64,000 bases of DNA from Macrostomum lignano. Its lineage: Eukaryota. The position numbers and the translations under genes are program-made. The notes under the pieces were generated by a model. That model was not told the DNA's origin. It worked only from the letters and a program-made list of their open reading frames with translations, and ran no database searches. Positions 3,183 to 27,732 of the stretch are shown piece by piece. The stretch lies in contig NIVC01000056.1 of the NCBI GenBank assembly GCA_002269645.1, positions 372,001-436,000 of the forward strand, read 5' to 3'. Positions within the stretch are counted from its first letter, which is position 1. Each line of letters starts with the position of its first letter.

Positions 3183-3545
3183 AAGGCGTGTTAGACACTA
3201 GTTAAGGCGTGTTAGACACTAGTTAAGGCGTGTTAGACACTAGTTAAGGCGTGTTAGACACTAGTTAAGGCGTGTTAGACACTAGTTAAGGCGTGTTAGA
3301 CACTAGTTAAGGCGTGTTAGACACTAGTTAAGGCGCGTATTAGACACTAGTTACGAGTAAGGCGTGTTAGACACTAGTTAAGGCGTGTTAGACACTAGTT
3401 AAGGCGTGTTAGACACTAGTTAAGGCGTGTTAGACACTAGTTAAGGCGCGTATTAGACACTAGTTAAGGCGTGTTAGACACTAGTTAAGGCGTGTTAGAC
3501 ACTAGTTAAGGCGCGTATTAGACACTAGTTAAGGCGTGTTAGGCA
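3183..3545. repeat. 21-bp minisatellite (AAGGCGTGTTAGACACTAGTT)n
   Basis: About 17 copies; one unit carries a 6-bp insertion around 3352-3359. Confidence 0.95.
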
Positions 3546-3637
3546 CTTTAAATGTTCAAGCGTCTCACAAGGACCACAAGATATTTTTGTTCGCACTTTT
3601 CCCTAGAAACTGAGTTAGATTAACGATCCCAGCTCAC

Positions 3638-4474
3638 CGCAGGGTGGCTTCCCGGCTCGTGCACAGCCACACGCAGTCCGTAGGCCTGCTCGAATATGTC
3701 GAAAAGGAAGCCCTGCTTGTGCTGGACTCCGTAACTCTCCACGGGACCCAGCCAGATAATGAGCGCCAGGCTGAACACGTCCTGAATGACATCCGGGTTG
3801 AACTGCAGCGTGTAGCAGTTGAAATAGTTCGGGTGGCTGAACGTCGTCACATCTAGCAGCCTGTCGTAGCAGCCCTTCGTGCCCTGCACCTGCGCAGAGG
3901 AGAACTTGAAAATGCAGTCGACGAATGAGTCGTTCCTGGAGTGGCCCAGCATCGCAGCTTGGGACGCCTTCAAGTTTTGAAAGTAGAGCCTGGATGAGTC
4001 CATAGGGAGGGTCAGCTGAAGCGCTTTCATGCTGGCGGACAAGACCTCCTTGTACTCTTGGTCGGTGGCGTCGCTCTGCGGTTCGGTCACTTTCTTCTCG
4101 TACGCGCCTTCGATGTCCAGCTCCGAGAGCAGCCGAAGACCATGCTGGCGCAGCTGCCAGTTGAAGTCAGTCGGTGATGGCACGGTTTTGTCCGTCCAGA
4201 GTCGGAAAGCGTTCTTCGAGAACGGCTGGTTGTTGCAGATGCTCACCGCCGGGAACGGGCTGACGTCGTCCAGATCGAGCCGGGTCTGGATGTTCACGTC
4301 GTACTGCAGGTAGTCGAGGGTGACGTTCACGGCGCTGTAGAACAGCAGGGAGGTGGAGCCGAGCACGAACAGGACCCACAGGTGGCTGAGAAAGCGGCTC
4401 GGACTCTTGAAAATTCGACCGACACCGCGAATGCTGGTGCTCTCGAGGAAGGCTCTGGTCTCTTCTGAGATCAT
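3638..4474 (-). CDS. DEG/ENaC (amiloride-sensitive sodium channel family) subunit, first coding exon
   Basis: ORF 4474-3620 has pre-TM1 STSIRGVGRI (HG motif position), hydrophobic TM1 LWVLFVLGSTSLLFYS, FPAVSICN, YFNCYT and GLRVAVHEP, all family hallmarks. Probable donor GCG/GTGAGC at 3637; downstream exons not recognised in the window. Confidence 0.85.
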
Positions 4475-4524
4475 CGTTCGGTGTGCGACTGCCGCAGGTG
4501 AGGAAGTTGTGGGCGCTTAGTTTA

Positions 4525-4922
4525 GGGTGGTCCAGAAAGGTATAACAAACTGAGTTTTCCTCTAGAGCTGCATGGATACTTTTTAATCCATTGTAATCTA
4601 AAAAATATTGGTACTTGCTTCAAAAAACATGAGGACACAGCATGAAATCGGCAGTGCAGTTTTTTAGGCACTGCTCAAAGTCATCGTCAGCTGCGTGATG
4701 AATGCCTTCAGCTGTAGATACTTCAGTTATTGAAACGGGTGTTCTTTAAGAAAACTGCTGCACCTTCCTAGTTTTCAAGGCAAATAGCAAGATTTTTCAA
4801 GTAAAAATATCATCAGAACAAGGTCCATAAGCATGCATGTATCAAGTTTCAACCCAATCCACCAACCCAGTGCATAGAAAACTCAGTTTGTCATCCGGGA
4901 GACCTTTCGGGACCATCAGCTG
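4525..4922. mobile_element. Degenerate MITE-like element (possibly Tc1-type) just upstream of the ENaC start
   Basis: Imperfect inverted ends sharing TGGTCC.GAAAGGT and ACAAACTGAGTTTTC; TA at the right end (4923-4924). Confidence 0.35.
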
Positions 4923-5838
4923 TAATCGCTATAGTCAGGGAAGAAATTCTTCACGACTTATAAAGGTTTAAGGAGGCTGCCGAAGATACGCAACAAATTA
5001 TGGCCTCGCAATCATGAAAAAATTCAAATAAAATACAGCTCCTGCTCCGTCGTTTCCCCGCCTACATAAAAACTCACTCAGTGACTCCCGAATTTGATAA
5101 ACAACTCAAGCGCTTTTCCAAATGCAATTAAATAAATTAATTTTCAAACCCAATTCAAGTTATGATTTGCTTAATCAACACAAAATTTCTCCAATAGATT
5201 ACTCACACTATAATTGTTGCGAATGCGCTGCACCTGCGGTTTAAGCTGAAAGATAGTTTCAAAGCTCAAGGTGGATTCCAGAAGTCAGCTAGCAATGGAA
5301 TGCTGGGCGGATGCCAATAAGGCCGTTGGAATTGGTTGGAGGGAGATATCCTCGATTTGAGATCCTCGGCTCTGGCTCTGCCATTGGCTGGGGATTTTGC
5401 CAGTCCACGCTGGGCGCTGCAAGTCCGGCAAAGCCCCAGCCTTCTCCCCTGAGCAGGCGGAGAAGTGCTCCCGGATTGACAAAATCTGTAATCAGCATTC
5501 TGAGTAAACAGCGGGGGCTGCGGCCCCCTGCTCCCGGATTTGTGTACTCATTTTCAGCCAGGCCGACTCAGGTTAGGGCAGCCCGGTCGCTTAGCAACCA
5601 AAACTGGAGATGTCATTCTCGGGGTGAAATGAAAAGCCTGAAAAGTTGGGGATAAGTTATACAAGCGTGTAACGACTGTCAGATGCGATGGCAATTTGCA
5701 GGGGACTACGAGGTCAATCCAGAGTGAAATGATGAATTTCTAGATGCAAAAGAACGGTTCAAATAGGATCCTCCAAATGAGAAATTCAGTGCCAATGTAA
5801 AACCCTGTATGAGTGCGTGCCTTCGCTCGTACCAGTGA

Positions 5839-6445
5839 GTATTGCTGGCACAATCACCATTCAGGATGCAACAGTTGCTGGCACAATCGCCATTCAGGAT
5901 GCAACAGTTGCTGGCACAATCACCATTCAGGATGCAACAGTTGCTGGCGCAATCGCCATTCAGGATGCAACAGTTGCTGGCACAATCGCCATTCAGGATG
6001 CAACAGTTGCTGGCACAATCGCCATTCAGGATGCAACGGTTGCTGGCACAATCGCCATTCAGGATGCAACAGTTGCTGGCGCAATCGCCATTCAGGATGC
6101 AACAGTTGCTGGCACAATCGCCATTCAGGATGCAACAGTTGCTGGCACAATCGCCATTCAGGATGCAACAGTTGCTGGCACAATCGCCATTCAGGATGCA
6201 ACAGTTGCTGGCACAATCGCCATTCAGGATGCAACAGTTGCTGGCACAATCGCCATTCAGGATGCAACAGTTGCTGGCACAATCGCCATTCAGGATGCAA
6301 CAGTTGCTGGCACAATCGCCATTCAGGATGCAACAGTTGCTGGCACAATCGCCATTCAGGATGCAACAGTTGCTGGCACAATTGCAATTCAGGATGCAAC
6401 AGTTGCTGGCACAATTGCAATTCAGGATGCAACAGTTGCTGGCGC
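5839..6445 (+). repeat. 33-bp minisatellite, possibly coding (IQDATVAGTIA)n
   Basis: About 18 copies of ATTCAGGATGCAACAGTTGCTGGCACAATCGCC; open in all three plus frames. Confidence 0.9.
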
Positions 6446-6866
6446 AAGTGTGACGTCAATGCAAATTGCGGCTGAATCACGCCAGCCCGCCGTCATGAAC
6501 TGACGAATGTCTGTCGCACTGGCAAGGTGGCAATGAATAATCATTGTATTTGTAGTCCCATGTAAATTTCTGCTCCAGCTGTAGACTGCTGTGCCCTCGG
6601 CCTGTTAGCGTGAAATTGCTTTTGGCATCGACACGCCAGGGCAGGGCAGCTCTGGGAGTTGCGCCGGGAGTGAAACCCGTCGGATCATTCTAAGAAAATA
6701 GCTAGAGCCGATCGAAAATATTGCAATTTTGTATGCGGCTGACGGATCCCGCTGCGGATTGACTGGGCTCGTTCTGAATTTTAGAATGCTGGAGTAATGT
6801 GATGCTCGGATTCCAGCTGATCTCTTCAAATATACTATTGAAATTAGTTAAACATTACTTTATCGA

Positions 6867-7249
<383 letters not shown>

Positions 7250-7685
7250 ATATTAAAGAACAAAAAAATTGTTTTTTGCCCATATTTACTTGAATCAACA
7301 ACTTTAATATGCATTTAGCCATTTGCTTTACTGCTAATCAATTATTGTAATCAATTATCAATAATCAATCAATTATTGTAACCAATAAAAATATGATTCG
7401 TAGGGATCATTTTTAAAGATGAAAATTTCATAACTTAAAGTAAAACAGACTGCCGAGATTAAGCATGATATTAAATGTAGCGGATAATTTTCATCCCAGT
7501 CGCGGCTGAGTGACTAATTTGATCGCACACCTGAAGTTGCTTTAACCTGCCGGATTGAAAGCTCCGATTTATTGCTAATTAGACATGAACTGGCCCGCAT
7601 GGCAACTCGTTCTAATTAGTTCTGAGCTCAACCCAAGCTTGGGGGCATAGCGATCCGTCACAACGTGCTCAATTTGTCGGTAAAG

Positions 7686-10600
7686 TCACACAGATGTAAC
7701 AGCCCCGTTGTGATGGCGCTCATCACAGCCTCCTTGCGGATGCGAGCGACGCTTCTCCAGCAGCTGACTCGACAGTCGGCGCTCAGTCTTGTAGTAGCGG
7801 TAGACTGGCCTCATCGGGCCCTGGGCCTGCTCCAGCTCCATCAGCGAGTGCTCAATGATGTCGCCAGTGTGAAAGTCGAAGTGAGCAAAGCACGATGCAA
7901 CTGAAAATGAGTAGAGTATTGTAGACCAGCTTGTAGTAAACTCTAAGAAGAAATAACTCTCCAAACCCTGCCGATCCTACTGGCAGTAGCACTGAAAAAG
8001 CATTTAAATTTGATGGAAGTTGAAAAATTTTGCAGCCAGTTTTTGTGAGCCCTCTTTGATCCCTATTAATTATGCAGCCGAAACCTGCGTGTTTGATACA
8101 GAAGCAACACAGACACAGACTGCTTACCGAGATTAGCGCTGGACAAGGCTGAGTTCTCAAACGGAACCGTTCCGATCACGACTGGCACGGAGAGCTGAAG
8201 AGATTCGCTGTGCCCGAGCACGCCAGAGGCTTCAATCTTGACCTGCCGAAAATTAAAATTGCAAATACACGAAGGTTCATATTGGAGTAAATAAGAAAAT
8301 GCTGATATTTTACAATGGCAAGAAAATTGAAAACATGAAAACTAAATACATGGCTGAGTTACACACATTACTTCTTTAGGTGAGTTCATGTAAAAGTTGG
8401 CTGACTGAAAAAATTAACTGTTTATTAAAAATTGATTGCATCATCATAACTAATTGCGATATCGAATTCTCCAGCTTACTTAGTTGAAATGCTATCTAGC
8501 ATAGACAGATGCCAAGACTCACTGGGGAGTTGCTGAGATGCCATGGCTCATGGGGGAGTTGCTGAGATGCCATGGCTCATGGGGGAGTTGCTGAGATGCC
8601 AAGGCTCATTGGGGAGTTTCTGAGATGCCATGGCTCATTGGGGAGTTTCTGAGATGCCATGGCTCACTGGGGAGTTGCTGAGATGCCATGGCTCATTGGG
8701 GAGTTGCTGAGATGCCATGGCTTCCGGGGGAGTTGCTTAGATGACAAGGCTCAGTAGGGGGACGCTGATGTCCTAGGCTTGAAGGGGGTAAGACACTTAC
8801 ATGTACCACATAAGTACATTTACTAATTGTGAAGCGTGCTGCCTTTGTCTAAATTACAGTCGTGCTTCTTCTTCTTTTCTTCAAGCAACCCATTGTAACT
8901 GGATGCTTAGTCGTTTATCGACCATTTTTACTGCAATATTTAGCGTGCACTTACAAGCTTCACTACGAGCGTATCTAAAGGAGGGTTGACAAAATTTGTT
9001 AAAATTTAATAAAGATAAGAAGAGATTTTCGGTGTTCTTTCCATGTAAGCAGCGCCTCGGTTGGTTCCGCATTCGCTCGAGCGAGGGTGGGGGGGGGTGC
9101 GGTCACGCCATTTCGAGTTCGCAGCCTAGAAGCATCAATAAACTGACTTTTTATGCCTAAATGGATTGTAGAGCTCGGAAAAAAAGAGACTAGCCTGGAT
9201 CAGTTCCATTCTCTATGCTTCCCACGACCCACATCATCGATCGCTGGATCGCCAGAGGTCAGCATTGCTTTTTCATTCCCAGCATCATTTTGCCCAGCGC
9301 TAATGGCTTTCGCCAGGCTCGTATTTGTTTGCACAGGGTAAATTTATGCGGCCACTCACTCACCTGCACTACGTACTCAATGCTGAGCACTTGGCAGCAG
9401 TGTCGGCCTGTCGGCGGCAGCGGCGGCACGTGAATGACGTCGTGATAAAACCCGGACGCACCTGGCCGCACGCGCTGCCCGGAGATGCTGAAGATCAGGG
9501 CGCTAGCAGTGTGAGAACGCTGGCCGGCTTTGAGAACCAGTCGCTGCTGGAACGTGATATGCGTGCTGTCGACGCAGGCGGAGGAGCCGTTGACCACCTG
9601 CATGCCGATGTCCATGGTCTCGCCCGGCACATAGCCAGACCTCGGCAGGGACAGCTCGCAGCGAATTCGGCCCTTGCTGATGCAGCAACAGCAAGTCACG
9701 ATCGCGTCCTTTTTCAGGCTAACGCCCTCCTTTTGAATAGAAGCAACGGCATTTTATTAAGATCGTGCTGTACTCATTGACCGGAGGTAATTACATTCTG
9801 AACATTTTTCTGTGTCTGAATTGGGCTGAATTATATCCTGCTTATGATCTCTTTTGCGTCCTTTGTGCTGAGAAAAATTCAATTTTTCCCCAAAGCCGAA
9901 ATTTTCATTTTGCTGACATCGACAACCAGATTCATTCATCAACTCGATAGTCTGTACTTTTCCAACATGCACAGCCCCGCCTGTCAGATTCATTCATCAA
10001 CTCGACAGTCTGTACTTTTCCAACATGCACAGCCCCGCCTGTCAGATTCATTCATCAACTCGATAGTCTGTACTTTTCCAACATGCACAGCCCCGCCTGT
10101 CAGATTCATTCATCAACTCGATAGTCTGTACTTTCCCAACATGCACAACCCCGCCTGTCAGATTCATTCATCAACTCGATAGTCTGTACTTTTCCAACAT
10201 GCACAGCCCCGCCTGTCAGATTCATTCATCAACTCGACAGTCTGTACTTTTTAACATGCACAGCCCCGCCTGTCAGATTCATTCATCAACTCGATAGTCT
10301 GTACTTTTCCAACATGCACAGCCCCGCCTGTCAGATTCATTCATCAACTCGATAGTCTGTACTTTTCCAACATGCACAGCCCCGCCTGTCAGATTCATTC
10401 ATCAACTCGATAGTCTGTACTTTTCCAACATGCACAGCCCCGCCTGTCAGATTCATTCATCAACTCGATAGTCTGTACTTTTCCAACATGCACAGCCCCG
10501 CCTGTGAAACACGCGGGCAACTCACAGTCAGACTCTTGCAGCGGTTCAGGTCGCGGGATCGCAGAACCAGGATGCGTCGCTCCCGGCTGTGTCCCGCAGT

Positions 10601-13600
10601 TCGCCAGGAATTCTCCAGATCAACGCGTAGACAGTAGGCAACTCTGGCCTTCACCCGGCCAGTGTCGGAGAAGTGCTCAAATGACGAAGGCAGTCTCTCC
10701 GGCAGTTGGAAGTGAAACCGGAACTGGTGAAATCCGGCTCGGATCAGGTGGCCTGGCTGGGATGCCTTCTCGTCCGGGCCTTGGAAATGGGAGACGGGAG
10801 ATTGGGGAATTTCTCTACGCTAGCTCTGATGACGAACGAGGATCCCATTTTGTTCCAGGGGCCACGCACAGTAAGGAGAGTCGCCTGGCTTTTAGCTCCT
10901 GCATTTTCTATCTGGTCTGGCGGTGCAGTGTTGTCAGTCTCGGGGGAAGCCACATGGAGCAAAAAAGAGTTTCATGCGCTTCAAGCTGAAGCACTTAACA
11001 CGACGATTGAGTAGAAAGTGTTCCATGCTCGCATATTCTGCACTTTGAAAGTGGCGTTGAGTCAGGATCCTTGTGCAGCATCTCGGTGGGTTTTAATTCA
11101 TACTAGAAGTTGTATTGCTCAAACTGGAGCTTGAGGACAGAACTACGCTTGTACGATATAGAATTTATGCACTGCGCATGGAAGTCATCAAAGTGGAACT
11201 CAGAAGAGGCTAAGATGGTCTTCTAACTTGAGTTGGGGCCGCCGGCCTTCTCCGATAAGCAGATATGGTGATAATCAGCCATCGAGGAAAGTTATGCTTC
11301 AATGCGGATTTTCCGCTTCGCTAGAGAGTGGCCTTCTGTGGGCGGGGCCGGGCGCGATGGAGTAAAAGTGCAGAGCAGGCTAAGGGAGTGAAAGTCTCTC
11401 CAATGCTCACCGCTAAGAACTCAGCCACTGAGTAGAAGTTTTCTTCAATTTTGCTCAGGTTCCTGTTCAGTTTAAATCGCATTAAAACTGACAGTCGGTG
11501 TTGCTGAACAGACGGGGTTGTAGCCTAGTGGTTAGAGCTTCTGACTCACGACTTGAAGGTCGGGGGTTCGATTCCCGATCCCGCTGGAACAATTTGTGTC
11601 CTTGAGCAAGACACTTAACTCTGCATTGCTTCAGTTCACCCAGCTGTAAAATGGGTGCCAGCATTAGCTGGGGTAATTGAGGGTGTGTGTGGCGACCCCC
11701 CCCCAGTCCTTGGACTGAACAGCCGTAAGCAGCCTTCAGATGCGCCGCGCAATAGCTGCGGCTGAGCTGTCGGTTGCACATCTGGCCCAATTAAGGCAGG
11801 TGTAATCAGTTATTACTATTATTATGAACGGTTTAAAAGTGCTTTTTACCTTTCCCAAACAGCTGGCTGCAGCACTGGAACAGGGTCTGCCGCCCGACCA
11901 CTGTCTCGGGTTGCGAGGCGTCCTTCTGCCGGGCCTCAACCCAGGAGACCTCGGCCTGCCCGGTGAATACAATGCGACAGCCTGCGGGTCGGGGGGGGGG
12001 TCGGCTAGTGGCTCCCAGAGATTGAATTCGTGCATCGCTTCATCTGCTCTCACGCCAATATTGGCGCCGCAATTGTTCGGCCCCACAATGCGTTCTAGAT
12101 GCGAATACAATGGATACCCAGTGAGCCGTGCAGTCTTCAGTCCCACCTCAGGCTGGGCCTCCCTTCAATTATCGTGAGCAATCAGTTGCTAAATAATGCA
12201 CAGCTCAGACCACAGTCAGTGTGCCCATCAAGGTCAGAAATTTTCTTCAAGCTGGTTTCGATCAAAGAGGCCCTTGAATCAGAATTTGATTTACAAGAAG
12301 GCTAACTGACGTGGGGGGCATCACAAACTCGAAAAATCACAACTCCGAAAAGCTCTTTCCATCACAAACCCGAAATATCACAAAAACCCGAAATATCACA
12401 ATACCCAAAATATCACAATACCCAAGATATCATAAACCCGAAATATCACAAACCCGAAATATCACAATACCCAAGATATCATAAACCCGAAATATCACAA
12501 ACCCGAAATATCACAAACCCGAAATACCATAAACCCGAAATATCAAAAAACCGAAATATCACAAACCCGAAATATCATAAACCCGAAATATCACAAACAC
12601 GAAATATCATAAACCCGAAATATCACAAACACGAAATATCATAAACCCGAAATATCACAAACCCGAAATATCACAAACACGAAATATCATAAACCCGAAA
12701 TATCACAAACACGAAATATCACAAACCCGAAATATCACAAACCCGAAATATCACAAACCCGAAATATCACAAACCCGAAATATCACAAACCCGAAATATC
12801 ACAAACCCAAAATATCATAAACCCGAAATATCACAAACACGAAATATCATAAACCCGAAAATAGCATTGGACACTGCTAGAACTTTCGGGGTTATGATAT
12901 TTAGGGTTTACGATGGGTGTTGCTATTTTGGTTTTCGGAGTTGTGATTGTTTGAGTTTGTGATGGCGACCCACCGGTTGGTTCGTTGCACACACAGCACA
13001 CAGGAAATGTCTTTTATCAGTTTTCTGTTGTTTATAATTTTAGTCTCATTTAAACTTCCATTCCTAGCCGATTTTATACGAACTATTTTTGTTCCAAACA
13101 GGCGGCTCTGTGAAATTTCATCTGTAGAAACGAACATAAATGGGAATCACGCGGTAGCTATTGAAGTGAATTTTACAGCAAAGCATTTCTTACTGCAACA
13201 AATATTTATACCTTCCAGTTGCTCCATCTGCTCCCTTCTTTTCCAGTTGCATCTTCGTTCAACCTCTTCACTCCCCCCCCCCCCCCTAATGGCCTAATGG
13301 CCGCTATAGGGGGAATTTTTGGCAACAAGCACCTCCTTTCTTTCCCAATCTCTCCCTGTGTTCTCTTTCCCTCATTAACTATTCAAGCCGGGCCTAATGA
13401 GAGCGCACAGCGGCTCTTTCTCCCTGTCCCGGCAGGTGCAGCAAGATATCGATTCTCTCCTGCAGATTCAAGCAAAGCCGGTCCCCAGTACCTGGGAGAC
13501 TCAGACACTGAGACTGAGACTGACGAGTTCTCTCCAGAGCCTAGCGAATCCCAGGAAGCTTTGCTTTCCTTGAGAAACACGGTGCATTGTCCGCAAGAAC

Positions 13601-15079
13601 ACTCTGCGTAAGGGCTCAAGAAAAATGCCCCTAGAAAAAACCAAGCGCTTTCCATCGCAAGCAGCCAAATCCTTAGGGAAATTCCGACCAAAATAACTCA
13701 TTGCCTGCCGGCCCAGCTGGTGACTCGGGCGGGCCTCGCGTAAATCATTTTTACAGAGCCATGCAGACGCGCAGTTCGGCCCTGCAAACTGCGTGTCCGA
13801 AATTGTGTTTGCCAACCCTGCAATGGTTTTCACTTACTTTATAGCTTTACTTATATGTAAATCTGATACTACTGGCGCAGCTTCCCCTGCCTGCTAGAGC
13901 AACTGCAGCCACAAGAAGCCCAGGTCCACACCGAATCGAGACAACTTTCTTAAAGCTCAGCCGAGAATAAAGCTCTATTTGGCTTGGCGAGAGGAGAATA
14001 TTCCGGGAAGTGTTAACTATTTTGGAAATTAGAGTTTAGTGATTTTGAAGGGAGGTCAGGGAAGCTGCAGAGAATTGGGAAGCCAGGGAAACTACAGGGG
14101 ATCTTTAAGGTCAGGGAAGCTGCAGAGAATTGGGAAGCCAGGGAAACTACAGGGGATCTTTAAAGTCAGGGAAGCTGCAGAGAATTGGGAAGCCAGGGAA
14201 ACTACAGGGGATCTTTAAGGTCAGGGAAGCTGCAGAGAATTGGGAAGCCAGGGAAACTACAGGGGATCTTTAAGGTCAGGGAAGCTGCAGAGAATTGGGA
14301 AGCCAGGGAAACTACAGGGGATCTTTAAGGTCAGGGAAGCTGCAGAGAATTGGGAAGCCAGGGAAACTACAGGGGATCTTTAAGGTCAGGGAAGCTGCAG
14401 AGAATTGGGAAGCCAGGGAAACTACAGGGGATCTTTGAGGTCAGGGAAGCTGCAGAGAATTGGGAAGCCAGGGAAACTACAGGGGATCTTTGAGGTCAGG
14501 GAAGCTGCAGAGAATTGGGAAGCCAGGGAAACTACAGGGGATCTTTGAGGTCAGGGAAGCTACAGAGAATTGGGAAGCCAGGGAAACTACAGGGGATCTT
14601 TGAGGTCAGGGAAGCTGCAGAGAATTGGGAAGCCAGGGAAACTACAGGGGATCTTTGAGGTCAGGGAAGCTGCAGAGAATTGGGAAGCCAGGGAAACTAC
14701 AGGGGATCTTTGAGGTCAGGGAAGCTACAGAGAATTGGGAAGCCAGGGAAACTACAGGGGATCTTTAAGGTCAGGGAAGCTACAGAGAATTGGGAAGCCA
14801 GGGAAACTACAGGGGATCTTTAAGGTCAGGGAAGCTACAGAGAATTGGGAAGCCAGGGAAACTACAGGGGATCTTTAAGGTCAGGGATTAGGAAGAAGGC
14901 AGAACAGAGAGGGACACACCGTGAACCCTCGCATCTTCTACGAAGTCGCAGCAGACGTGGCCGGCCACCGAGTCTCCCGGAGAGAACAGACCGGCTGCGT
15001 TGTCAAGGGCGACGTCAAGGCGACGTAGTCGAGCCGTGGCTGCCGTAGCTCCGGACACAGGGGTGCCTGGGACGCCCAT
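7686..15079 (-). CDS. Alpha-arrestin (arrestin domain-containing protein), multi-exon, ~417 aa
   Basis: Well-supported exons: 15079-14920 (LDVALDNAAGLFSPGDSVAGHV), 10819-10526 (GFHQFRFHFQLPERLPSSFE...VAYCLRV), 9729-9364 (GYVPGETM...PPLPPT...IEYVVQ), 8242-8128 (LSVPVVIGTVP) and 7900-7686. Two 52-bp exons (13902-13851, 11462-11411) are tentative but phase-compatible. All junctions are GT-AG. Confidence 0.85.
8523..8750. repeat. 29-bp minisatellite in an arrestin intron
   Basis: About 8 copies of GGGGAGTTGCTGAGATGCCATGGCTCA(T/C)N. Confidence 0.9.
9929..10505. repeat. 58-bp minisatellite in an arrestin intron
   Basis: About 10 copies of GATTCATTCATCAACTCGATAGTCTGTACTTTTCCAACATGCACAGCCCCGCCTGTCA. 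Confidence 0.95.
11514..11825 (+). mobile_element. tRNA-derived SINE with CORE-like domain (copy 1)
   Basis: Box A TAGCCTAGTGG (11521) and box B GGTTCGATTCC (11565). CORE-like TGTGTCCTTGAGCAAGACACTTAAC...CTGTAAAATGGG follows; (TAT)n tail. Near-identical to the copy at 60636-61057. Confidence 0.9.
12313..12971. mobile_element. Foldback/MITE element enclosing a 16-bp tandem array (ACAAACCCGAAATATC)n
   Basis: Left end GGGGGGCATCACAAACTCGAAAAATCACAACTCCGAAAA is inverted at the right end (...TTTTCGGAGTTGTGATTGTTTGAGTTTGTGATGGCGACCC). Termini match the element at 27733-28207. No TSD seen. Confidence 0.75.
14055..14886. repeat. 55-bp minisatellite in arrestin intron 1
   Basis: About 15 near-identical copies of GTCAGGGAAGCTGCAGAGAATTGGGAAGCCAGGGAAACTACAGGGGATCTTTAAG. 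Confidence 0.95.
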
Positions 15080-15629
15080 GGGAGGCGGCTGCTGCGGCTG
15101 CTGCTGTTGCTGAGCCAACTTGCCGTCAGCTCAAATCGAACTCTGTTCTTTAAAACACCGCAGAGAAAGTGAACTCTGCCTTTTTTGAGACTTAATTCAA
15201 GGAGGAGGCGGAAATGCCATTGCTGTTTGAAAAACGTAGGAGCAACCGCAGAAGAGCTGATTAAGTTACTCCAGGCTGAAGTTGATTGGTCAAGGCGTTT
15301 TCAGGAGGGCGGATGCGCCTCTGAAAGCCGGGATTCGCCAAGCTGTTGTTGATCGATCAGGAGGGGAGAGAGAAGCTGCAGGAAAGAATATCAGTTTTGA
15401 GACCGACCGACCGACACGGAGCTGCAAGTCGGTGTCCAACGTGACCTTCAATGCTATCAAAGTAGCCGTGAATTGCAGTGCGCGGTGTCTGTGTAAATGG
15501 ATACATCTTGATAGGGATTAATCGGGAAATATCTTTCCCATGCAATTTCACTTTTCGTGCATTATGTCTATGAGCAGCATAATAATTTGATCTTTTGGTC
15601 TAAATCGCTATCTTGAGAACTATAGACAT

Positions 15630-16507: not shown

Positions 16508-17078
16508 CAATTAGGCTACGACCCAGACACTTCAAATAGGGCGTCGATTGCACCTCAGTCAAATACTTGCAGAATGAGGCCCCTCATATAAAACGAATCA
16601 GTGGTCTAAACTCAGTAGACGCTCATTTTTAGTACCTTTTATTGATTTAATAAATTTGATTGAGCTTCAAATACCTTCAACGGGGTATTCGGGTGCCAGA
16701 GCATTCGTATTGAAATCGTAAGAAGAAGATTAAAAATTGAAACAGAGAGTCACTCCCAACAGTAGGGAATAATTGTATGTATCAAATGAATAGACTTTGT
16801 GCTCAGTGCAGACAGAGTAGTATGCATGCTGTGTCTTGGGGTAAAGAAATGGCCTCCATGCCAATCGCAGCAATTTTATTCTTGGTACAGTTGAAAGAAA
16901 TGAATTCGGAACTTTTCGCATTTTTCTGTTAGGCTTCAAGGCAATTAACTGTTTACGGCAAAATAATTTAACGCCGTTTTTTCCTATTCAGTCAATACTA
17001 CTAATAGTAGAGTGAATCGCTTTTAGCTGGGATTAAACTGATGTCGCTAATTCCCGGGATGCCAGCATGGAATACTTC

Positions 17079-17582
<504 letters not shown>

Positions 17583-19197
17583 TCTTCATTCAGCCAGTCG
17601 CTCAATCGATAACAGTGTATTTTCGCTCTCGTCAATCATCTTGAGGATTGGCTGGAGTTTGCAAAACTTCTAACAGGCAGCTCACACAATATTAGTTGGC
17701 TTCTATGTTGGCAAAAATTTTCTAGTTGCCTACCATAAAGTTTAGGTTTCAATCTTCGCATACACGTAGATACGTACACTAGGGAGACAGAGAAAACTGA
17801 ACTTTTAGTTGTCCATGAATTCGACAAGCAGCCATGAGGTCTAGCCCTCATTGGAAGTGAGCATACCTACTGAGCCGCTGTACAGTCTAATGCCTTGCCT
17901 CCATGAATCGACTGGGAAATGCTATTCTAAATTTTACTGTGTAGACTCTCTACCCGGCTCAAATAATTGCTGATTGCTCAGCTACCGAGTCCTGCTTCTT
18001 CTAGTGCGCTGGGTGGGTGGCTGGTTAGATCCGGCAGGGAGACGGGGAGGGGATAGACGATTTGGGAACGAAGCAGCTGCCGGAGTGTCAGGTGATTTCA
18101 GGACAAAAAGCTTTTTCAGTTTCCAGCCTGTCGCCAGCTAAAACCCACTGCAGGCTTTTATCAATTTGCCAGAGGCCGAGAGGGAGCTGCAATGCCGTTT
18201 GAAAGCTGGCTGTGTAGCCCGGATATGAAACAGACGATTGCTCCAGTGTAGAAACGTGCGAAAAATCCCATTGAAAATAATGAATGTTGAGATAGACAGG
18301 GCGCTGCTGTCAACATTTCACTGAGTGCATGGATGAATTTTCCCGAAGCAAAACAGGAGGCGTCAGCTGCAGCGGGTGGGTGTTTTTCCCCAGCCAAATC
18401 TGCAACACAGTCGCCGATTTTGGGGAAAAAATTAAATTTCGCCAATAAAAGAAGTTTGAGTACCCGCTTACCTGTTTTGGCTTCATTTTGAGTTTACAGC
18501 CTGGGCAAAATTACATTTCCGCTGGGTCCCCTGCTTACCAGCAAAAAAATAGAGAATCCATTTCACGGATTTTTTACGAGGGAGACGACATCTCAGTGAA
18601 ATCTCAGTTAAAGGGAAACCAGCCAGACAGGCAACTTTCAGGAAGTCAAAAAAGTCTGGCTAACTACTGCATGAAACTCGCAAACCCCCGTCCCAGTTCC
18701 GCAAGCAGTTTGTTTCACAGAAAAGACAATTTTTGTTGCAATCTATTCCCACAGATCATCGCTCAGGGCAAATACAGGACCTCTTCCTCGCTTGCTTGAG
18801 AGTAGAGAGCGCTCGGTTTCTGTCTCAGCTTCCTTTGGTGCCTAGCAACATCGAAAGCAGAACTGCGGGGCGATGTTAGGGGTGGGAGAGGATCCGTTGC
18901 AGGCCAAAATTTGACTCTGAGCAAACAATGCCACCCCGGAGCTGAATGGATTGCAGTTTCAGACTCGCAGTCTCATCTCCGCTTTCGCTAAGAGCTGATG
19001 GAGGCCAGAATCGCCGTGTTGGAACCGCCCCAAACCCTGGCCTATAGGCGACGGTGCGCTGAAAGCTTTAAAAAGCGGATCGCAGGCGACGCACCTCGCT
19101 TTTCGCTTCCCAACTCACCTGAAAAGCTTAGCTGGCCTACCAGTTGACATAAAACTTTTGCTGTCGATTGTCCAAATTGTCTAAATTCGATCAGGCA

Positions 19198-22100
19198 ATG
19201 TCGCAGCCAGGGGCATTGCTGCTGCTGCTGCTTCTCGCCTCGGCCTCGGTTTTCTACGTGGCTGAAGGTAGTTGCAGTCAGACCGTCTGTCCTAGCAACA
19301 CCGACTGGTGCCACCGGTTCCACCTGGTCTCCACGACACCTGGCGGTTGTAGCACGCCGCCTACAGCTTGCCAGTTCCTCAACCTGACCACGCTCCAGCT
19401 CTATCGGAGCCACATCAACGAGCTAATGACGTCCGAAAGCGGGTTGGTGACTTCCACTCACTGCTCTTAGAGTCTAGACTAGCCCTCGAAAGATTTTGGG
19501 GTCCATTGGACCCCAACGGTATCTTTAGTTAGAACAAAATCATACTAAATGTTATGTTAAAACAACCAGATGTTAGGAAAATTATTATTTTGAAGGTATT
19601 CAACCGTATAAGTCTCGTAGTTCTTATTTTTTATAAGCCGAGTTCACCAAGAGAACTTATTATATTGGGGATTCTTGGGGTCTAGTGGACCCCGTAACAA
19701 ATTTTCTATATTTATATAGTTGAAACACATAAGGTCGGTTGGGGCGGTGCAATATTTTCTAAACTTTCTAATATTTTCTATTTCTAGAATATTCCAATAT
19801 ATAGCTGATGGGTATATAAGGAGCACTTCTTGCCCTAATCTTGTGAAAATAGCTACTCTACAACAAAAGATTTCCAGCTGATTCATAGAGAAAACTACTA
19901 TACCAAGCATTTACTCAGCAAGTATTTGCGAAAATTTGCAAAATGGCTTCTTCTAGACCGATGATCGTAAGAGCTGCTAAGTCTAGAGCTCTTGAAGTGA
20001 TTGTGAACCAACTGGTTGCTCACCCAGAAGCCCATATTGACGCTGAAGTATCGGACGAAGACGAGGCTCTTTCGGATATTGCTGAAGCCGAACAAGATAT
20101 TGATTTGCCCGATGTTGAAGACGCATCTATAGTGATTCATTAAGGCCAGCATCACCTGTTGCTGCCGCAGCTGCTGCTGGTGATGTAGAAAGAGGTTATC
20201 ACAGTCCTAGTGGTCAAGTATGGCACCATGAAACTTCACGTCCTGGACAGAAGCCAGCCTGTAACATCTTGCGCAATAGACCTGGAATCACAGCTTACGC
20301 TGCAGCCGCATTCACGATGAAGAGTCGGCTTTCCACGTCATCTTTGACAATGACATGGTTGACACAATTGTGATAGAGACCAACCGCGAAGCTAGGAGAG
20401 TTCTTCGAAATGCTTGGAATCCAACTACCAGAGAGGAAATCAATGCCTTCATTGGCCTAAACATTCTTCGCGGAGTATTCAAAGGAAGCATGGAGAGCAT
20501 CGATGAGCTCTGGAGTGAGGAATTCGGAAGAAAGGTTTTCAAGAACTCCATGTCTTTGACGCGCTTCAAGACTAATTCGCCAATTTCTGCGATTTGACAA
20601 CCGCGAAACTCGAAATGCGCGACTGCAAAGAGCTAGATAAGCTTGCCGCTGTGAGGTTGCTGCTTGTCGGACTTGTCCAGAACTCACAGAAGAGTTACTT
20701 TCCCAATGAAGCTGTTACTGTAGACGAACAGCTGTTTCCCTATAGAGGAAGATGCAGCTACATGTACATAATTAGTACTAATCAGTACTCTCAGCTTCAT
20801 TGCCTAATTTCATTTAGAAAGTACAAGAATCAGTTGCTATGATCTTGATAATATGCGACTAATGTATTATGTTCGCCATTGTATTGGTAGTTTCTTTGCT
20901 TTGAACAATAAATAATCAATAAAGCATTGTTAACATGCATCAACTCAGAGGGGTCCATTGGACCCCAAATATAATAAACCGACAATTGTTTTCCGTAACG
21001 TTCGAGGCTAGAAGATAATAAAGTATCGAAAAATGTCAAAATATCTTTCTTTTTTGTTTTCAGATCTTTCTGGGTCGGAGCCACGTCCGCACCGAGCCCT
21101 GCGACACTCGGCGCCTGCTGGTCGCACAGCCTGAGCCAAGTTGCTTCGATTCCGGTCACTGGCGGCGCTACCGGCACGCTTGTGACGGTGAAGCGGGGCA
21201 CAAGCGGAGAAGTGACGTACTCGTTCGCCAACCACGGAGATTCCAACAATGCGATCTGCGAAGTCCCCATCGAGAAGAGTAACGCTATTACCACTGGCGA
21301 TAGTAAGTACTCAAGTCTAATCAAGGCCATGGCTGTGTCAGTTTCAAACAAATTCCTATTGATACAGTTGCTTTAGATAGCTTCAAAGGCAAGCCAATTC
21401 ACAAGCTATCTGCTTCACAGCCAAACTTCACAGCAGAATCGAGAAAAAAGAACCAAAACGTTTACCTTCAGAAAACAGAAAGACAATACTGACAAGAATT
21501 GTTTACCAACTATTTCTGATCATCGTAAACCGATTAGTTATCTCATACAGGAGAGTTGTTTTAACGCTTTTCACAGAGCTCTGCTACGCGGAAGTCAACA
21601 AGTGCTTCTTCCTAAATGTGACCCCCGCTCCCATGAGCACGCACTTCACGAACTGCGGAGGAATCGCCATGGCGAAGGTCGCCACCGCAGCCAACGCTAC
21701 GGAGGAAGCGGCGCTGCTGTAATCTCATCTGATGTTTAAACACACTTTCTAAGCTACTCTCTACCAGTGACGGATACAGTCAGATAGAATTCAGACTGAT
21801 CTAGCTGGTCCTCGCATCAGATACAAGTTTTCCTCAGCAATATATTCGTGTGCACATGGATAGTCCATATAAAAAACTAATACAAACTTCAAGCACTTTA
21901 TCACTGAAACCCTAAAAGTTTAGTTTTTAAACTCTGTCATTATCTCAAGGAAGGCCTTTCCTCTTCCTCTTATGGTCCAGATTTAGCTCCATCGATAGTA
22001 ATTATTGTTTCGCAGTTACGTCCGTTAAAATGTCATGCCAATGTTACACTCGATCGCAGAGACTATTTTAACTATCTGCCGAAGTCCGACACCACCAATT

Positions 22101-25000
22101 ACTTTATCAACGCTGCCGTCTGTTCTCTGCCTTACACCTTCAACTCGACTGGAGAAGTACTTCCCATGACGGAGTCTTGGAGTTACTCTCCAACAACGAA
22201 AATCAGAGACTTGAGTCAGCTCGCCTGCGCCATGATCAACGCTAGTAATGCCTTGAACTGGGAGCAGTGCCCCGCCAGCCCAACAAGCTACATCTGCTAC
22301 GAAGAAATCCGTGAGTGACGCCAGTCTTGAAACTGACTACACGTTTTTACTTCCCCAGTAACTGATAAAACTGAACTCGGTGCAATTTCAGCTCCAGCCG
22401 TGAGCGACCAGATATGTCAGAACGGCTACTGCCACAGCTTCTGGCCCATGGCTCCAAACCCAGGCATCTCGTACGAAAAGGCCAAGCAGAAGTGCAACTC
22501 GTCAATGCCGATGCGAAACGGCTTGTTGGAGCTACTGGGCGAGAGCTCGCTGCTTCCGTTCCGAGTTGTGAACGCCTCAAGGTGAGTACAGGCGTTATTT
22601 AAATGCCCCCATGGATAGAAAGTTCCATGGATATTTTATTATAAGTTCACTCTCATTTCAGCACGTCAAAGTATTTCACTGGAATTAAGAAGTCAGCTTT
22701 GAGCGCGCGACAGTTCATGTGGAATGCAAGCACATTTTCGAGTTTAAGTGTTTCTAGCGGAGCTTCTGATGACGCCGAACACTGCATAATTGCCACAAAA
22801 TCAGCATCTGCATTATCATACAGCGTCGCTGACTGCAATGTCCAACAATCCACTAAAGTAGCTTGTGGAAGCCCCGCGACTTTCGAAGCAGCGACTTCTG
22901 CCGCCAGGACATTCAAGGAAGCTGCAGCTGTGTGCAAAGGTGTTTTGAAAGAGCTACCATTCAGTGAAACAGATGTTACGAATGTGCTTACTAGTGACGG
23001 CTCCATCTGGGTGAACGCGTTTGAGTACCAGCCTTGGAACTGGTCGGACGGACAGTCCATATTCAATGAGAAAAGTCCGATCGGAGACGCCCTCGCAGTG
23101 CAGCTGCTTCAATCACCGAACGTGCGCTATAACCAAGAGCAATGCGCATATATTCAAGTGGACTCGACGAACAATGTCGCTACTCTATCTCTGGTTGTCG
23201 ATAGCTGCAACATGAATGAATCAGTAGTCTGTCAGTTCAGTAAGTACCTGATGACCATGCTTTGTGCGAAAGTGATTGTATCAGTAAATTTACACTGTTT
23301 TCTGAATTACTTTGCAGACTCTACAAAGTGCAGCGGAGTTCCGAGATACGATTACGGCTACATCAGTGGTACAGTGAGCAACAACCAGACTGATTCCTCA
23401 TTCAGCGTCGATGTTCTGAACGGAAGCTGCCCGATGGATTTGGGCACGGAGTTCGCCACACAGTCGGCCGTATTCTTTTCTTGCATCAACTACAACACTA
23501 CATACGAGGGAAACGAGACTACTATGGTGCAGTCGCAGTGCTCTATGAGCGGTCACGGACCTGATTGGTCTCCAATAATGAACTCGAACCTGTGCGTGAG
23601 CAACTTCTGTGACACGAGACAAGTAGTGGATTACTCATATCCGAACAACATTGTTTACCTGAACGCTTCTGCTGCGGATGGTTCTTCTCTCGGCAACGAT
23701 AAGCCGTACATCGAGAACGGCACAAAGATGACTCTATCCTGCAAGCCTGGAGCAAGGCTTGTCAAAGTCGATGACAACTTTGAAAAGGGCAACGCCATCT
23801 CTAACGAAGTCACGTGTCTTCAGTCGAGCTGGACTTACTCGGTTGCAAGCTTTTCCAACAGCACCACTATTCAGGTGTGCGACAAGACGACATCCTACAC
23901 TAAGCTGCTCAAATGTGAGCCAATCAGGTGCAACACGAGCGACTTCAAGTACCTGAAGTCGATTGACGATCGCATCGGAAAGCTTTTCCTAGACCAGAAC
24001 GAAATGCTGACGGTAAATTGTACAACAAACGCTAGTGCAGTGTTCAACCTCCACCCCAGCCTAAACATTAAGTGCATTCTCACCGGAGACTACACCTATG
24101 GCTACGCCATTTCCAATGTGTTTATGGGCACAAATGTAACCCAAATTTGGGACAACAGCAACATCACTCTACTCGACGAGACCATTGACGCTGTGTGTCG
24201 GTCCACTGAATTTCTGGCTTGTCCGCGAAACCACACTTGGTTGTCTGAATCGGCTCTCGAGATCACGTCTCTGAGCACAAGCTGGCCTGGGTACACTTCG
24301 AGCAGCTCAGCTTTTCCTCCGAACTCTACCTTGACACTTCGCTGCATCGAGCCGCGAGTCAGCGATCGCCTGTGGACAAGCATTGGAGAAACGAGCACGA
24401 TGCGGTGTCCAATGACCAAAGCCGACGCGAGTCTTCAATGGGAAGGTCCGAGCCTCGGTTGCAACTATGAGACTTGTCCATCGCCAGAAAGCCTCTTCCC
24501 ACCAATGTCGATGGCTACGGGGTTAAAGAGCAACCTCTCAGACGCATGGATCGCCTACTACAACTCAAGCAAATTCCCGCCTGCCAGCCAGATCTTGATT
24601 AACTGCTCGCTCGACGTGAGCGTCTTCCAAATCCTCTACTGCAACGACAGCGGCCAGTGGGTGCCTGTTCAGTACAGCTACGTGAACGACACTCTGGATC
24701 TCTGCATCGGGTCTTACATCAACTGTTCGATGGCTACGACTCCGACTCCAGTGCCGACAACGACGCTTGTAGTTGAGACCACGACTGAAACACCAACGGA
24801 AACCACCGAGGATACAACCACGGTTACGTCGAATGCGACCACAGTAACAGTACATATAACCAGCTCGACAACACCCATCACAACAACGAGTGTTGAGACA
24901 ACAGACACCACTACCGTCGAAGCATCTACTGCTGTAGAAATCACTACAGCAGAATCCATAGTCACTTCTAGCGCCGCTACCACCGCTGCAAGCACAGCCT
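19198..25000 (+). CDS. Secreted/cell-surface glycoprotein, copy 1: signal peptide, degenerate C-type-lectin-like and Cys-rich modules, Thr-rich stalk
   Basis: Phase-consistent GT-AG exons 19198-19442, 21064-21302, 21577-21718, 22060-22310, 22392-22581, 22662-23239 and 23318-25000 (~1109 aa). Signal peptide MSQPGALLLLLLLASASV; CTL-like WVNA..WNWSDG...CAYIQ...VVCQ. The 3' exons after 25000 are unresolved. Confidence 0.8.
19483..21007 (+). mobile_element. Internally deleted, frameshifted piggyBac-like transposon with CTAG target-site duplication
   Basis: Ends CCCTCGAA...TTCGAGG flanked by CTAG (19479-82, 21008-11). Transposase fragments IVIETNREA...EINAFIGLNILRGV...LWS...MSLTRF and DKLAAVR...VTVDEQLFPYRGRC (first catalytic Asp near 20723); the rest is absent. 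The paralogous intron has a single CTAG (30339-42). Confidence 0.9.
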
Positions 25001-25971
25001 GTAAGCATACGTTTTGGTTGTAATATTTTCAATGAACTCATGCCTTTTAGATCGAGAAAAAGCAGTCTAGATAATGATGGACAATGCGTCAGATTCCCTG
25101 GCAAAATCTTCAAACCCGAAATGGTAAGTTGGAAAGTTACTTTTCTTGTGTTTTTGTATCATTTGTAAATTGAAAGTTTCTTAAGAGAATAATTGGGGTA
25201 AGTAAAGGTTTATGGCAACGGTTCCATGCATTTGTTTTTGCACTTGATATGAAATACTGTCTGCAAAGGATGTCGAGCTTTTCTTCCGTGGCTCGTACGA
25301 ATCGTTTTGTTTTTTTGCTAATAATTGAGCAAGTGAACTGTGTGAATTTGGCGGAAATCAACTGAAATTACTTTCTTTACAAACTTTATACAAGTTATTG
25401 CGCATATTTTTGTATTTTTTACTTTGAATTGAGCAGAATTGTATTTATCTACAATTTACCATTTTTCCTGTACGAGCGTACAGACGATGTGCATTAATTG
25501 GAACCCATAACTGAGTTTGAGTTGTAGCAGGTTACACTTGGTTAGAAGTTTAATCTGTACTTTTTACTTCTTCTCTTCTCCACTTTAAGCTTTTGTCTGA
25601 ATATCCAGTGGGTTTCTTATTATTTCGGAAACCTGTGATTGATAATTTGAATTTATGACAAATAGAAAAAGTTTTCCAGGTGACAGACTGTTCGGTTCTT
25701 TAAAGCATGCAGCTGAAGCAGCTATAGTCGTTATTCAGTTAAGTCGAAAACTTATTTTATATTCTTAATTATTTGCAGACGGCTGTGGGCTCCCTAGCAC
25801 CCCCGGGTCTCCTCTGTCGATACCACCACCTCAGGGACGGTGATAGAGCGTGGCTCGCACAAGACCAATGAGCATGAGAAGAGCATGCACATGTACAGGT
25901 TTCAGTCCCTTAAACGTTGGCTTTCGTGTGCTTTATTAGTTACGCAATGGATAGCATGTTTCATATATAGG

Positions 25972-27021
25972 TGTTGTGGCCTGCGCCACAATGACCTTCT
26001 CCTCAACCTTTTTTGGTGCATGCGAACCGCCCGGTCTGCCGCCCTAGCCGGTTCTGTCTGGTTTGAGCTGGTTCAGCCTGGTTTTGGTTTTGGGCAGCCG
26101 GCGTGTGCGCTGATTGGCTGGCTGGGCCGGCAGACCCTCTCTTTTCTACCCCCCCCTCGTGGAGCCTTACCCAGCGCGTGTTTTGATTGGCTGGGCTGGG
26201 GTGGGGTGCTCGCGGGGTTCGGTTTGTGTGCGTTTGCGCTCAGGCCGGTTTGGCCCACTCCCCCATTTTTCTGCATACTACGCTCGTATTTATTAGCTAA
26301 CTTGGAGCCGGCAGGTGGCACGCGTGTTGGTGTGGTTAGGGCTAAACCAGCTACTGAGTAGTAAAACTACTGTAAAAGTACAATAAACTGCACGAGCCCA
26401 GTGAATCATCGAACAGTGCATTACAAGCTAATCTGTTCCACTCGCCGTCTTCGAGCTGCCAGTCCAGTTATCACGGCAAAATAGACTGCGCTATATGAGT
26501 CGATTCGACCCCGCCCGGTGAGCTAAAATTACGTTTGTTCGGGTTGCGTTCGCGTTTTTTGGGACTCTCTGCACGTGTCTCCCATCTAGCCTCGCCGCTT
26601 CACCTACTCACCTCCTCGCTCACCTGCACTCTTCGATTGGCTTGGAGTGTCTGTACGCCCCAGCCAATCCATCACCTCGTATCTCTTGATTGGTCCGGAG
26701 TGTCTGTACGCCCCGGCCAATCCCTCACATTCACCTCGCTTTCTCATTCACCTCGGTGACTCCCGGGCCAGCTCTGAGTGGCTATCCGCTCCGCTGACTG
26801 CAGCAGTACCCCGAGCCTTCCGTGACCGAGGAGTGTCTGTACGCCCCCGAGTCGCATCTCTCCCTCTTCCCCTCGGAGTGGCCACCCGCCTCGAGGAGCG
26901 CCGGCCGTTCGCCTTCTGTCTATCCCTCCGCCGCGCACCCGGGGCAGTCCCGCACCGAACCCGCTACCCGGGGAAAACAAAATGACCGGGCTAGACGAGA
27001 TCGCAGCCCGCAAGTTCAACA
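25972..27021. mobile_element. Solo LTR
   Basis: TGTTG...CAACA termini, 4-bp TSD TAGG (25968-71, 27022-25), internal AATAAA; interrupts the 16-bp satellite. Confidence 0.75.
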
Positions 27022-27390
27022 TAGGATGTTTCATATATAGCATGTTTCAAATATAGCATGCCTCATATATAGCATGTCTCATATATAGCATGTTTCATAT
27101 ATAGCGTGTTTCATATATAGCATGTTTCATAGATAGCATGTTTCATGTATAGCATGTTTCATATATAGCATGTCTCATAGATAGAATGTTTCATATATAG
27201 CATGTTTCATATATAGCGTGTTTCATATATAGCATGTTTCATAGATAGCATGTTTCATGTATAGCATGTTTCATATATAGCATGTCTCATAGATAGCATG
27301 TTTCATATATAGCATGTTTCATATACTCGTATAGCATGTTTCATATATAGCATGTTTCATAGATAGCATGTTTCATAGATAACATGTTTC
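27022..27390. repeat. 16-bp minisatellite (TAGCATGTTTCATATA)n
   Basis: About 23 copies; one more unit lies left of the LTR (25951-25970); one unit has a 6-bp insertion around 27324-27331. Confidence 0.95.
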
Positions 27391-27732
27391 AAAACGTACG
27401 AAAGTAGATGGAAAAGTTTTTCGGGGAGAATACTAAATATTTTTGAGAAAAATCCGTATATGTACATTAAACAATGACAATCTCACTATTGGAGGGGGGC
27501 GGTTCACAATTGTCGGAGATCAAAGAGCAGCACTTAAAAACACTAAGAAGATGGCCCACGCCACTTTATGTACAGTCGTATGCTGAGTGTTCAAATTAGA
27601 GTTAGGTTTTACATAATGTGCTCCTTGCGCTCCTTGCTCACCCGAGTCAGGACGCGAGTGTTTCAGCTTCCCGAAATCTGGGGGCGTCAGGACGCTCTCA
27701 CTTAACTGTTGCCCACGTCAGGACGCTGGGGC

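Follow-up and report, generated by a model that had tools for sequence, protein, structure and literature searches.

Two short insertions at duplicated TA dinucleotides, TA-CGAG-TA and TA-CGAGCG-TA, recur in a 64-kb region of the flatworm Macrostomum lignano (assembly Mlig_3_7, GCA_002269645.1, contig NIVC01000056.1; this whole stretch is the window), and they are very probably donor-site footprints of Tc1/mariner elements ending 5'-CGAG...CTCG-3'. Relative to a single TA the insertions add 6 and 8 bp, and we refer to them as +6 and +8 scars. The window contains long non-coding stretches, ~20 minisatellite arrays, and a mariner whose termini match the inserted bases.

Homologous loci were found via the 90% cluster of an LRR protein encoded in the window by an open reading frame (ORF) of 568 aa (41800-43506), which yielded two M. 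lignano paralogs, one on contig NIVC01003206.1 (loci L005 and L007) and one on contig NIVC01005153.1 (L006). These loci are colinear with window positions 19.3-55.8 kb at 95-99% identity. Insertions and deletions (indels) were collected in two ways: each of 18 arrays (7.9 kb in total) was aligned, with wrap-around, to its consensus unit, and all indels that separate the homologous contigs were listed (128 records, of which many are shared).

Six-base-pair insertions in tandem arrays

The +6 form was present in two unrelated minisatellites and once in unique DNA, as follows.

3172-3547, unstranded: 21-bp minisatellite, unit TAGACACTAGTTAAGGCGTGT, ~17 units
3352-3359, + strand: +6 scar TA-CGAG-TA (TACGAGTA) in one 27-bp unit of the 21-bp array
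27021-27391, unstranded: 16-bp minisatellite, unit ATGTTTCATATATAGC, ~23 units
27324-27331, - strand: +6 scar, reading TA-CTCG-TA (TACGAGTA on the - strand), in one 22-bp unit of the 16-bp array
47686-47693, + strand: TACGAGTA in unique DNA, present in all three paralogous copies; candidate scar

Across the 18 arrays we counted 27 insertions and 13 deletions, all of 1-3 bp save these two +6 events. Both net insertions longer than 3 bp in 7.9 kb of array sequence are thus the change from TA to TA-CGAG-TA, read as reverse complements. Given TA duplication, the probability that both inserted 4-mers equal the end of the resident terminal inverted repeat (TIR), in either orientation, is approximately (2/256)^2, or 6e-5. 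The 27-bp unit reads TAGACACTAGT-TA-CGAG-TA-AGGCGTGT and its sister units TAGACACTAGT-TA-AGGCGTGT (AGT-TA-AGG), while the 22-bp unit reads ATGTTTCATA-TA-CTCG-TA-TAGC and its sisters ATGTTTCATA-TA-TAGC, so that in each array the neighboring units preserve the empty site. An initial annotation of this DNA had reported both +6 changes, and its coordinates and sequences proved exact; splitting the arrays into units likewise bore out its proposal that they are the same event in opposite orientation at a duplicated TA, with neighboring units acting as empty sites.

The 16-bp array has a 7-unit repeating pattern of 112 bp (read by eye from the unit list), and the counterpart units in the two preceding 7-unit repeats are clean, implying that the scar at 27324 arose after the array last expanded. 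A homologous 16-bp array at L007 (7370-7785 of that locus, on NIVC01003206.1) comprises 25 units, all of 16 bp and none containing TACTCGTA; its last two units and 3' flank are clearly orthologous to those of the window array. The +6 scar at 27324 is therefore derived and specific to the window copy, and the scar-free array gives the footprint reading further empty-site support. The 21-bp array, made up of 13 TAGACACTAGTTAAGGCGTGT units, three 23-bp variants, and the 27-bp unit, sits downstream of the stop codon of an ASC/ENaC-like ORF (3620-4474, - strand). This array has no external empty-site control because even the best paralog of the neighboring ORF is distant (55% identity). Its three 23-bp units (3318-3340, 3431-3453, and 3496-3518) share a change of GGCGTGT to GGCGCGTAT; considered as TA-type scars, they were rejected as one common variant spread by array dynamics.

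The initial annotation had also listed a third TACGAGTA at 47686, which we recovered there. All three paralogous copies have it, which leaves it without an empty-site control. By raw count the 8-mer is weakly enriched (3 versus 0.75 expected; 4 of 100 shuffles reach 3), and the array case is nevertheless strong because sister units serve as empty sites.

Two side observations concern the surroundings of the 16-bp array. A ~1,045-bp segment (25973-27014), absent from L007 and with ATAG at both junctions, parts the first array unit from the remaining units and carries one of the +8 scars listed below (26279). Just downstream lies an interstitial telomere-like tract of degenerate (CCCTAA/CCTAA)n (27932-28099).

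A commoner eight-base-pair form

The 10-mer TACGAGCGTA (reverse complement TACGCTCGTA), equivalent to TA+CGAGCG+TA, is present in 9 copies in the window versus 0.046 expected under a first-order Markov model. Exact and one-mismatch forms together number 14, versus 1.86 in dinucleotide shuffles. Once arrays are masked it is the top non-low-complexity 10-mer, and no 11-mer that contains it is frequent. The copies are located as follows.

8964-8973, + strand: +8 motif TACGAGCGTA
25471-25480, + strand: +8 motif TACGAGCGTA; also in L007
26279-26288, - strand: +8 motif (TACGCTCGTA on the + strand) within the ~1-kb window-specific segment
36655-36664, + strand: +8 motif within a foldback element, in its 26-nt loop; common to all paralogs
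38504-38513, + strand: +8 motif within the 5' part of the mariner copy; common to all paralogs
39364-39373, + strand: +8 motif; common to all paralogs
44902-44911, + strand: +8 motif; also in L005
45724-45733, + strand: +8 motif; also in L005
51004-51013, - strand: +8 scar (TACGCTCGTA on the + strand) in a sacsin-like gene, read as a short GT..AG intron

Compared with the paralogs, six of the sites are shared; one, for which an empty site with a single TA exists, is polymorphic. Exactly 1 of the 128 paralog indel records has the form TA-X-TA, and it is this site, at 51004: the scar is present in the window and in L006 (TT-TA-CGCTCG-TA-CAT), whereas L005 is empty, with a single TA (...CCTTATT-TA-CAC...). 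The TA is therefore duplicated wherever a homologous empty site, be it an array sister unit or L005 at 51004, has only one. We considered whether a larger repeat was hidden around the 10-mer and rejected this, as the flanks of its sites are unrelated (mean identity 26%, as for random sequence) and an 11-mer common to two sites is found only twice in the window. The pattern is that of a stereotyped 8-bp insertion, consisting of 6 nt plus the TA duplication, at TA sites, and represents another footprint form of CGAG-ended elements, more common than the first.

In the window, +8 outnumbers +6 by 9 to 3, and all 12 scars of either form retain at least the CGAG of one end. The initial annotation had taken +6 as the scar form; it is the minority here, and the nine +8 copies had been missed. 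The alignment of units and paralogues that it envisaged genome-wide was made for the window and its paralogs: both large array insertions were +6 events at TA, and the paralogs yielded one TA-X-TA indel, of the +8 form. Its excision-footprint reading is now well supported by the scar-free L007 array, the nine +8 scars, and the single-TA empty site at 51004.

A possible intermediate form was also noted:

62387-62395, + strand: TACGAGGTA, possible +7 scar TA+CGAGG+TA; single copy, not above chance

Several +8 sites lie within larger features. The copy at 36655 is inside a 363-bp foldback-type element (36469-36831) with nested inverted repeats (24-, 43-, and 94-nt arms). The copies at 44902 and 45724 fall in a 2.5-kb segment (44811-47317) that begins inside a 20-bp array, is found in the window and L005, and is absent from L006 (~13189). 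The site at 51004 belongs to a large sacsin-like gene (50839-59474; SACS Pfam match on the L006 homolog), whose ORFs include the ATPase-like motif ELVQNADDAGA.

The resident mariner and its relatives

The element whose ends match the scars, and a second candidate with CGAG ends, are located as follows.

38337-39005, + strand: non-autonomous mariner with TA duplications on both sides (element 38339-39003, 665 bp)
2455-2474, + strand: candidate left end, TA/CGAGTGACGTCACGCACT (slashes mark the element boundary); pairs with 5812-5831; uncertain
5812-5831, - strand: candidate right end, TA/CGAGCGAAGGCACGCACT; 15/18 match to the left end; uncertain

As the initial annotation had described, the mariner ends in TA/CGAG...CTCG/TA, and its 28-bp TIRs (38339-38366 and 38976-39003; start CGAGGGGCATTC) match at 25 of 28 positions (CGAGGGGCATTCAAAAAGTTTTGGCAAC). 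It thereby shows both the TA duplication and the TIR length (~28-30 bp) of the mariner class. Its 134-codon ORF fuses an N-terminal HTH_48 domain (Mos1-type, E 1.7e-7) directly to a C-terminal tail, and alignment to a relative indicates that ~740 bp encoding the catalytic core have been deleted. The copy is present in all three paralogous copies of the region, implying an old insertion.

A protein search with the ORF fragment returned three distant matches (the source of loci L002-L004), none from M. lignano. The relatives encode an HDN-34-D transposase, for which the best solved structures are Mos1 and SETMAR (E ~1e-24), and elsewhere keep TA/YGAGGG ends. One of them, at L003 (2000-3320; ENA ERZ25072293), is full length (1,321 bp), bounded by TA/TGAGGG... 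and ...CCCCTCG/TA, with the TA-flanked TIRs TGAGGGTTGTTCAGAAAGTTTTGGCAAC and CGAGGGGCATCCAAAAAGTTTTGGCAAC; another, at L002, ends in ...CCCCTCG/TA and has the signature HDN...(34)...PCD with a Mos1 match at E 7e-25. On the strength of its TIRs, its HTH_48 domain, and the ends and D,D34D transposase of these relatives, we therefore classify the element at 38339-39003 by sequence as a non-autonomous, internally deleted, CGAG-ended copy, probably of a true mariner lineage. The CGAG/CTCG bases of the scars equal its first and last 4 nt, and CGAGCG corresponds to 4 nt from one end joined to 2 nt from the opposite end. Approximately 100 bp to its left lies a palindrome (38213-38231, ACGAGTAtttttaACTCGT) with CGAGTA and CTCGTA half-motifs, which may be a degenerate double scar or may be due to chance.

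The pair 2455/5831, TACGAG[T/C]GA[C/A]G[T/G]CACGCACT, has 15/18 matches where 0.01 such pairs are expected by chance, and the first six bases of its right end are the 6-nt core of the +8 scar (CGAGCG). It encloses the 21-bp array and a host-like ASC exon/ORF and has no transposase ORF, and no further copy was found in the window. The pair may represent a second family with CGAG ends or be a chance match; we treat it as uncertain because it encloses host-like sequence and has no transposase.

A proposed model of cutting and repair

When Tc1/mariner elements excise, the donor flanks keep the element's 5'-terminal bases as 3' overhangs, which are then end-joined. Applied to the scars, an element would insert at TA and duplicate it, and on excision the transferred strand would be cut exactly at the element end and the non-transferred strand ~4 nt inside, leaving each flank with TA and a 3' overhang CGAG, after which host end-joining would seal the break. 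In the full register (C:G, G.A, A.G, G:C) both strands would be ligatable without synthesis, and resolution of the 2-bp mismatch would give CGAG or CTCG, i.e., the +6 scar, which is observed in both orientations. A 2-nt overlap followed by 2-nt fill-in, in which one end contributes 4 nt and the other 2 nt, would give CGAGCG or CGCTCG, i.e., the +8 scar, again observed in both orientations. The initial annotation had already suggested 4-nt overhangs annealing around a tandem G.A mismatch; the proposal is plausible, but it is not new, having reportedly been published for Minos.

The insertions, the TA duplication, the empty sites, the agreement with the ends of a resident element, and the very strong excess of the 10-mer are observed directly; we infer the cut position (from repair products only), the repair register, and the responsible family. 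All 12 scars keep at least CGAG, which lends moderate support to a stagger no shorter than 4 nt, and we hold such a cut to be somewhat favored over shorter ones. Shorter scars are at background: TACGATA (or TATCGTA), a 3-nt scar, is present 4 times versus 3.4 expected, with none in an array or at a paralog indel, and TACGTA, a 2-nt scar, is present 9 times versus 5.8 expected and is not enriched. A TACGTA cluster at 31.5-31.8 kb, considered as +4 scars, was rejected as a local repeat. TACGATCGTA, in which two 3-nt overhangs would be fully retained (CGATCG core), has 0 copies in the window. Duplex energies computed for the heteroduplexes did not discriminate between models.

Alternative explanations

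Several points weigh against attributing the scars to excision of such elements. The evidence derives from one 64-kb region and its paralogs, with genome-wide abundance an extrapolation. None of the homologous contigs compared has an element still sitting at a scar site (a filled allele), and the sole CGAG-ended copy within reach is a non-autonomous fossil fixed in all three paralogs. The +8 form is three times commoner than +6, yet its 2-nt register lacks Watson-Crick pairing, and the simple 4-nt model does not predict this dominance. Characterized D,D34D mariners, Mos1 and Himar1 among them, leave 3-nt footprints. Hsmar1 leaves T(T/A)A (table, PMC3878927).

It is worth asking whether the scars could come from a canonical 3-nt mariner cut, with overhang CGA and the fourth base supplied by the other end or by repair synthesis. 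The resident element's relatives are of D,D34D type, their closest solved structures are Mos1 and SETMAR, and mariner-family footprints are 3 nt (PMC3878927); by our own derivation, moreover, two CGA overhangs joined through a mismatched 2-nt overlap (G.A/A.G) and filled in would yield TACGAGTA. The +8 core CGAGCG, however, cannot be built from CGA and TCG, whose full retention would give the CGATCG that has 0 copies, and an identical untemplated G would be required at 9 independent sites. With the +5 motif TACGATA at background and at least CGAG retained in 12 of 12 scars, we regard a 3-nt cut as distinctly unlikely. Rather less improbable, albeit still unlikely in our estimation, is an origin in two families, in which the +8 scars would derive from a TA-targeting family with CGAGCG ends and the +6 scars from CGAGGG-ended mariners with a 4-nt stagger. 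Overhangs of 5-6 nt from the former would anneal in register (C:G, G:C, A.G, G.A, C:G, G:C) with four Watson-Crick pairs, and such full-register annealing would account for a uniform and dominant +8 form. The TA-flanked TIR pair at 2455/5831 (CGAG[T/C]GA..CACGCACT), one end of which begins CGAGCG, would be a candidate source, but it has no transposase ORF, encloses the host-like ASC exon, may be spurious, and has no other copy in the window. To our knowledge, moreover, no Tc1/mariner element has a stagger above 4 nt. The range given in the literature is 2-4 nt (PMC6943129).

The 10-mer might instead be a functional near-palindrome (TACG-AG-CGTA), for example a dimeric-factor site under selection, with the array events coincidental. 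Its near-palindromic form, the restriction of every copy to non-coding DNA, and the absence of mutations in 9 of 9 copies and their paralogous counterparts would fit such a role, though the last is only mildly unexpected otherwise (~2-3 differences expected in ~100 compared bases). A functional site is nonetheless highly improbable, given that at 51004, compared with L005, the 10-mer came about by insertion of 8 bp at a single TA, that its +6 relatives are insertions into array units, and that one copy lies within a dead transposon and another in the loop of a foldback element. Short identical oligomers at many places can also be technical in origin, but we give hardly any credence to assembly, polishing, or adapter artefacts, as the sites recur at homologous positions on three contigs, assembled independently and 1.5%-5% different from one another, and the site at 51004 is polymorphic exactly as expected for a TA target site.

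Other features of the region

Minisatellites (periods 15-58 bp) and long microsatellites are unusually dense at 1380-17582, 39752-44827, and 60634-60777; the latter include (TAG)127 at 6867-7249, (GATA)126 at 17079-17582, and (GTCA)38 at 43817-43967. A tandem segmental duplication (19190-24887 versus 30050-34687, 95-98% identity), both copies of which are also in L007, includes a large ORF, Thr-rich and of secreted or mucin-like type (22699-25023 and 32500-35135). Comparison of its copies (19-25 kb versus 30-35 kb) revealed no TA-type indel, and the 16-bp array lies outside it. Copy 1 alone has a 1,519-bp insertion (19483-21001) with CTAG on both sides and short inverted ends (CCCTCGAA.../...TTCGAGG), which probably represents a DNA transposon from a different superfamily.

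Implications of the probable fixed scars

As a rule, footprints of excision come to light only when the event has been induced, the fixed ones being too short to be recognized. Fossil scars can be recognized here: array units and recently duplicated contigs provide empty sites, and the +8 form is a distinctive 10-mer. This 10-mer, TA-CGAGCG-TA, with 9 copies and one demonstrated empty site, is the most useful new fact, and both the predominance of +8 and the density of fixed scars in this M. lignano region would be new. Extrapolated from 9 copies in 64 kb, the 10-mer would number on the order of 10^5 in the 764-Mb assembly. We tentatively entertain, as a doubtful possibility, that a D,D34D mariner lineage with CGAGGG ends cuts the non-transferred strand at least 4 nt inside the element, as against the 3 nt of Mos1, Himar1, and Hsmar1, and that the M. 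lignano genome is pervasively marked by the 10-mer scar. If mariner is the source, it would be a D,D34D mariner with a stagger of at least 4 nt, extending the 4-nt stagger from the Tc1-like Minos.

If the genome is marked in this way, the scars would constitute a readable genome-wide record of past excisions and end-joining in the flatworm germline or neoblasts. Scanning the whole genome for them would be a simple way to tally earlier cut-and-paste events and the range of end-joining outcomes in a regenerating flatworm model for which transgenesis exists. Indels of +6 and +8 in introns and satellites should be recognized as scars in paralog and haplotype comparisons.

Comparison with known systems

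Minos, from Drosophila hydei, is a Tc1-like element that targets TA and ends in CGAG...CTCG. In the work of Arca et al. (1997, Genetics 145:267), its typical footprint reportedly consists of the four terminal nt plus TA and forms via a 4-nt-overhang heteroduplex. A Minos footprint of 6 bp has been described (PMC10992017), and sequencing of three alleles left by Minos excision gave +4, +6, and +8 bp, with Thr-Arg gained in the +6 case (PMC6980720); ACT-CGT, encoding this Thr-Arg, is a reading frame of TACTCGTA. The scar type and the model are therefore already known for the superfamily, while the density here is unusual. The 8-mer and 10-mer scar sequences were not mentioned in this context in the literature searched. 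Tc1/mariner footprints carry 2-4 terminal nt (PMC6943129), and a 4-nt cut is therefore within the known superfamily range. The initial annotation had called such a cut non-canonical for a mariner; it would be unusual for a D,D34D mariner only.

The scars resemble those of Minos in the TA target, the terminal CGAG, and the 6-bp footprint, and the +6 and +8 forms match two of the three Minos alleles (+4/+6/+8) in size. TA plus four terminal nt plus TA is found in both versions, CGAG at 3352 and 47686 and CTCG at 27324, as the Minos model expects from resolution of a 2-bp mismatch. The elements differ, however. Minos is a DD34E element of ~1.8 kb with 255-bp inverted repeats, whereas the local mariner has 28-bp TIRs and D,D34D relatives, and the only CGAG-ended element within reach thus lacks the features of a Minos-type source, a Tc1-like DD34E element with long inverted repeats, although a Minos-like family may lie elsewhere in the genome. 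Minos alleles also come from induced events, whereas the scars reported here are fixed fossils in a flatworm, with +8 over +6 at 9:3.

As with Mos1, Himar1, Hsmar1, and Sleeping Beauty (SB), the scars combine TA duplication with terminal bases from end-joined 3' overhangs and show two complementary heteroduplex variants. The SB footprint, for example, is C(A/T)G, i.e., TAC(A/T)GTA (PMC6943129). Unlike these elements, which leave 3 terminal nt (+5), at least 4 nt are kept here (+6/+8), and the +5 motif is not enriched. Reconstructed Hsmar2 gives heterogeneous, non-canonical footprints with cuts outside its inverted terminal repeats (ITRs) and so offers no reference stagger. The Hsmar2 ITRs contain 5'-CGAGGG-3' (PMC3770610) and in this respect resemble the local TIR, which starts CGAGGGGCATTC.

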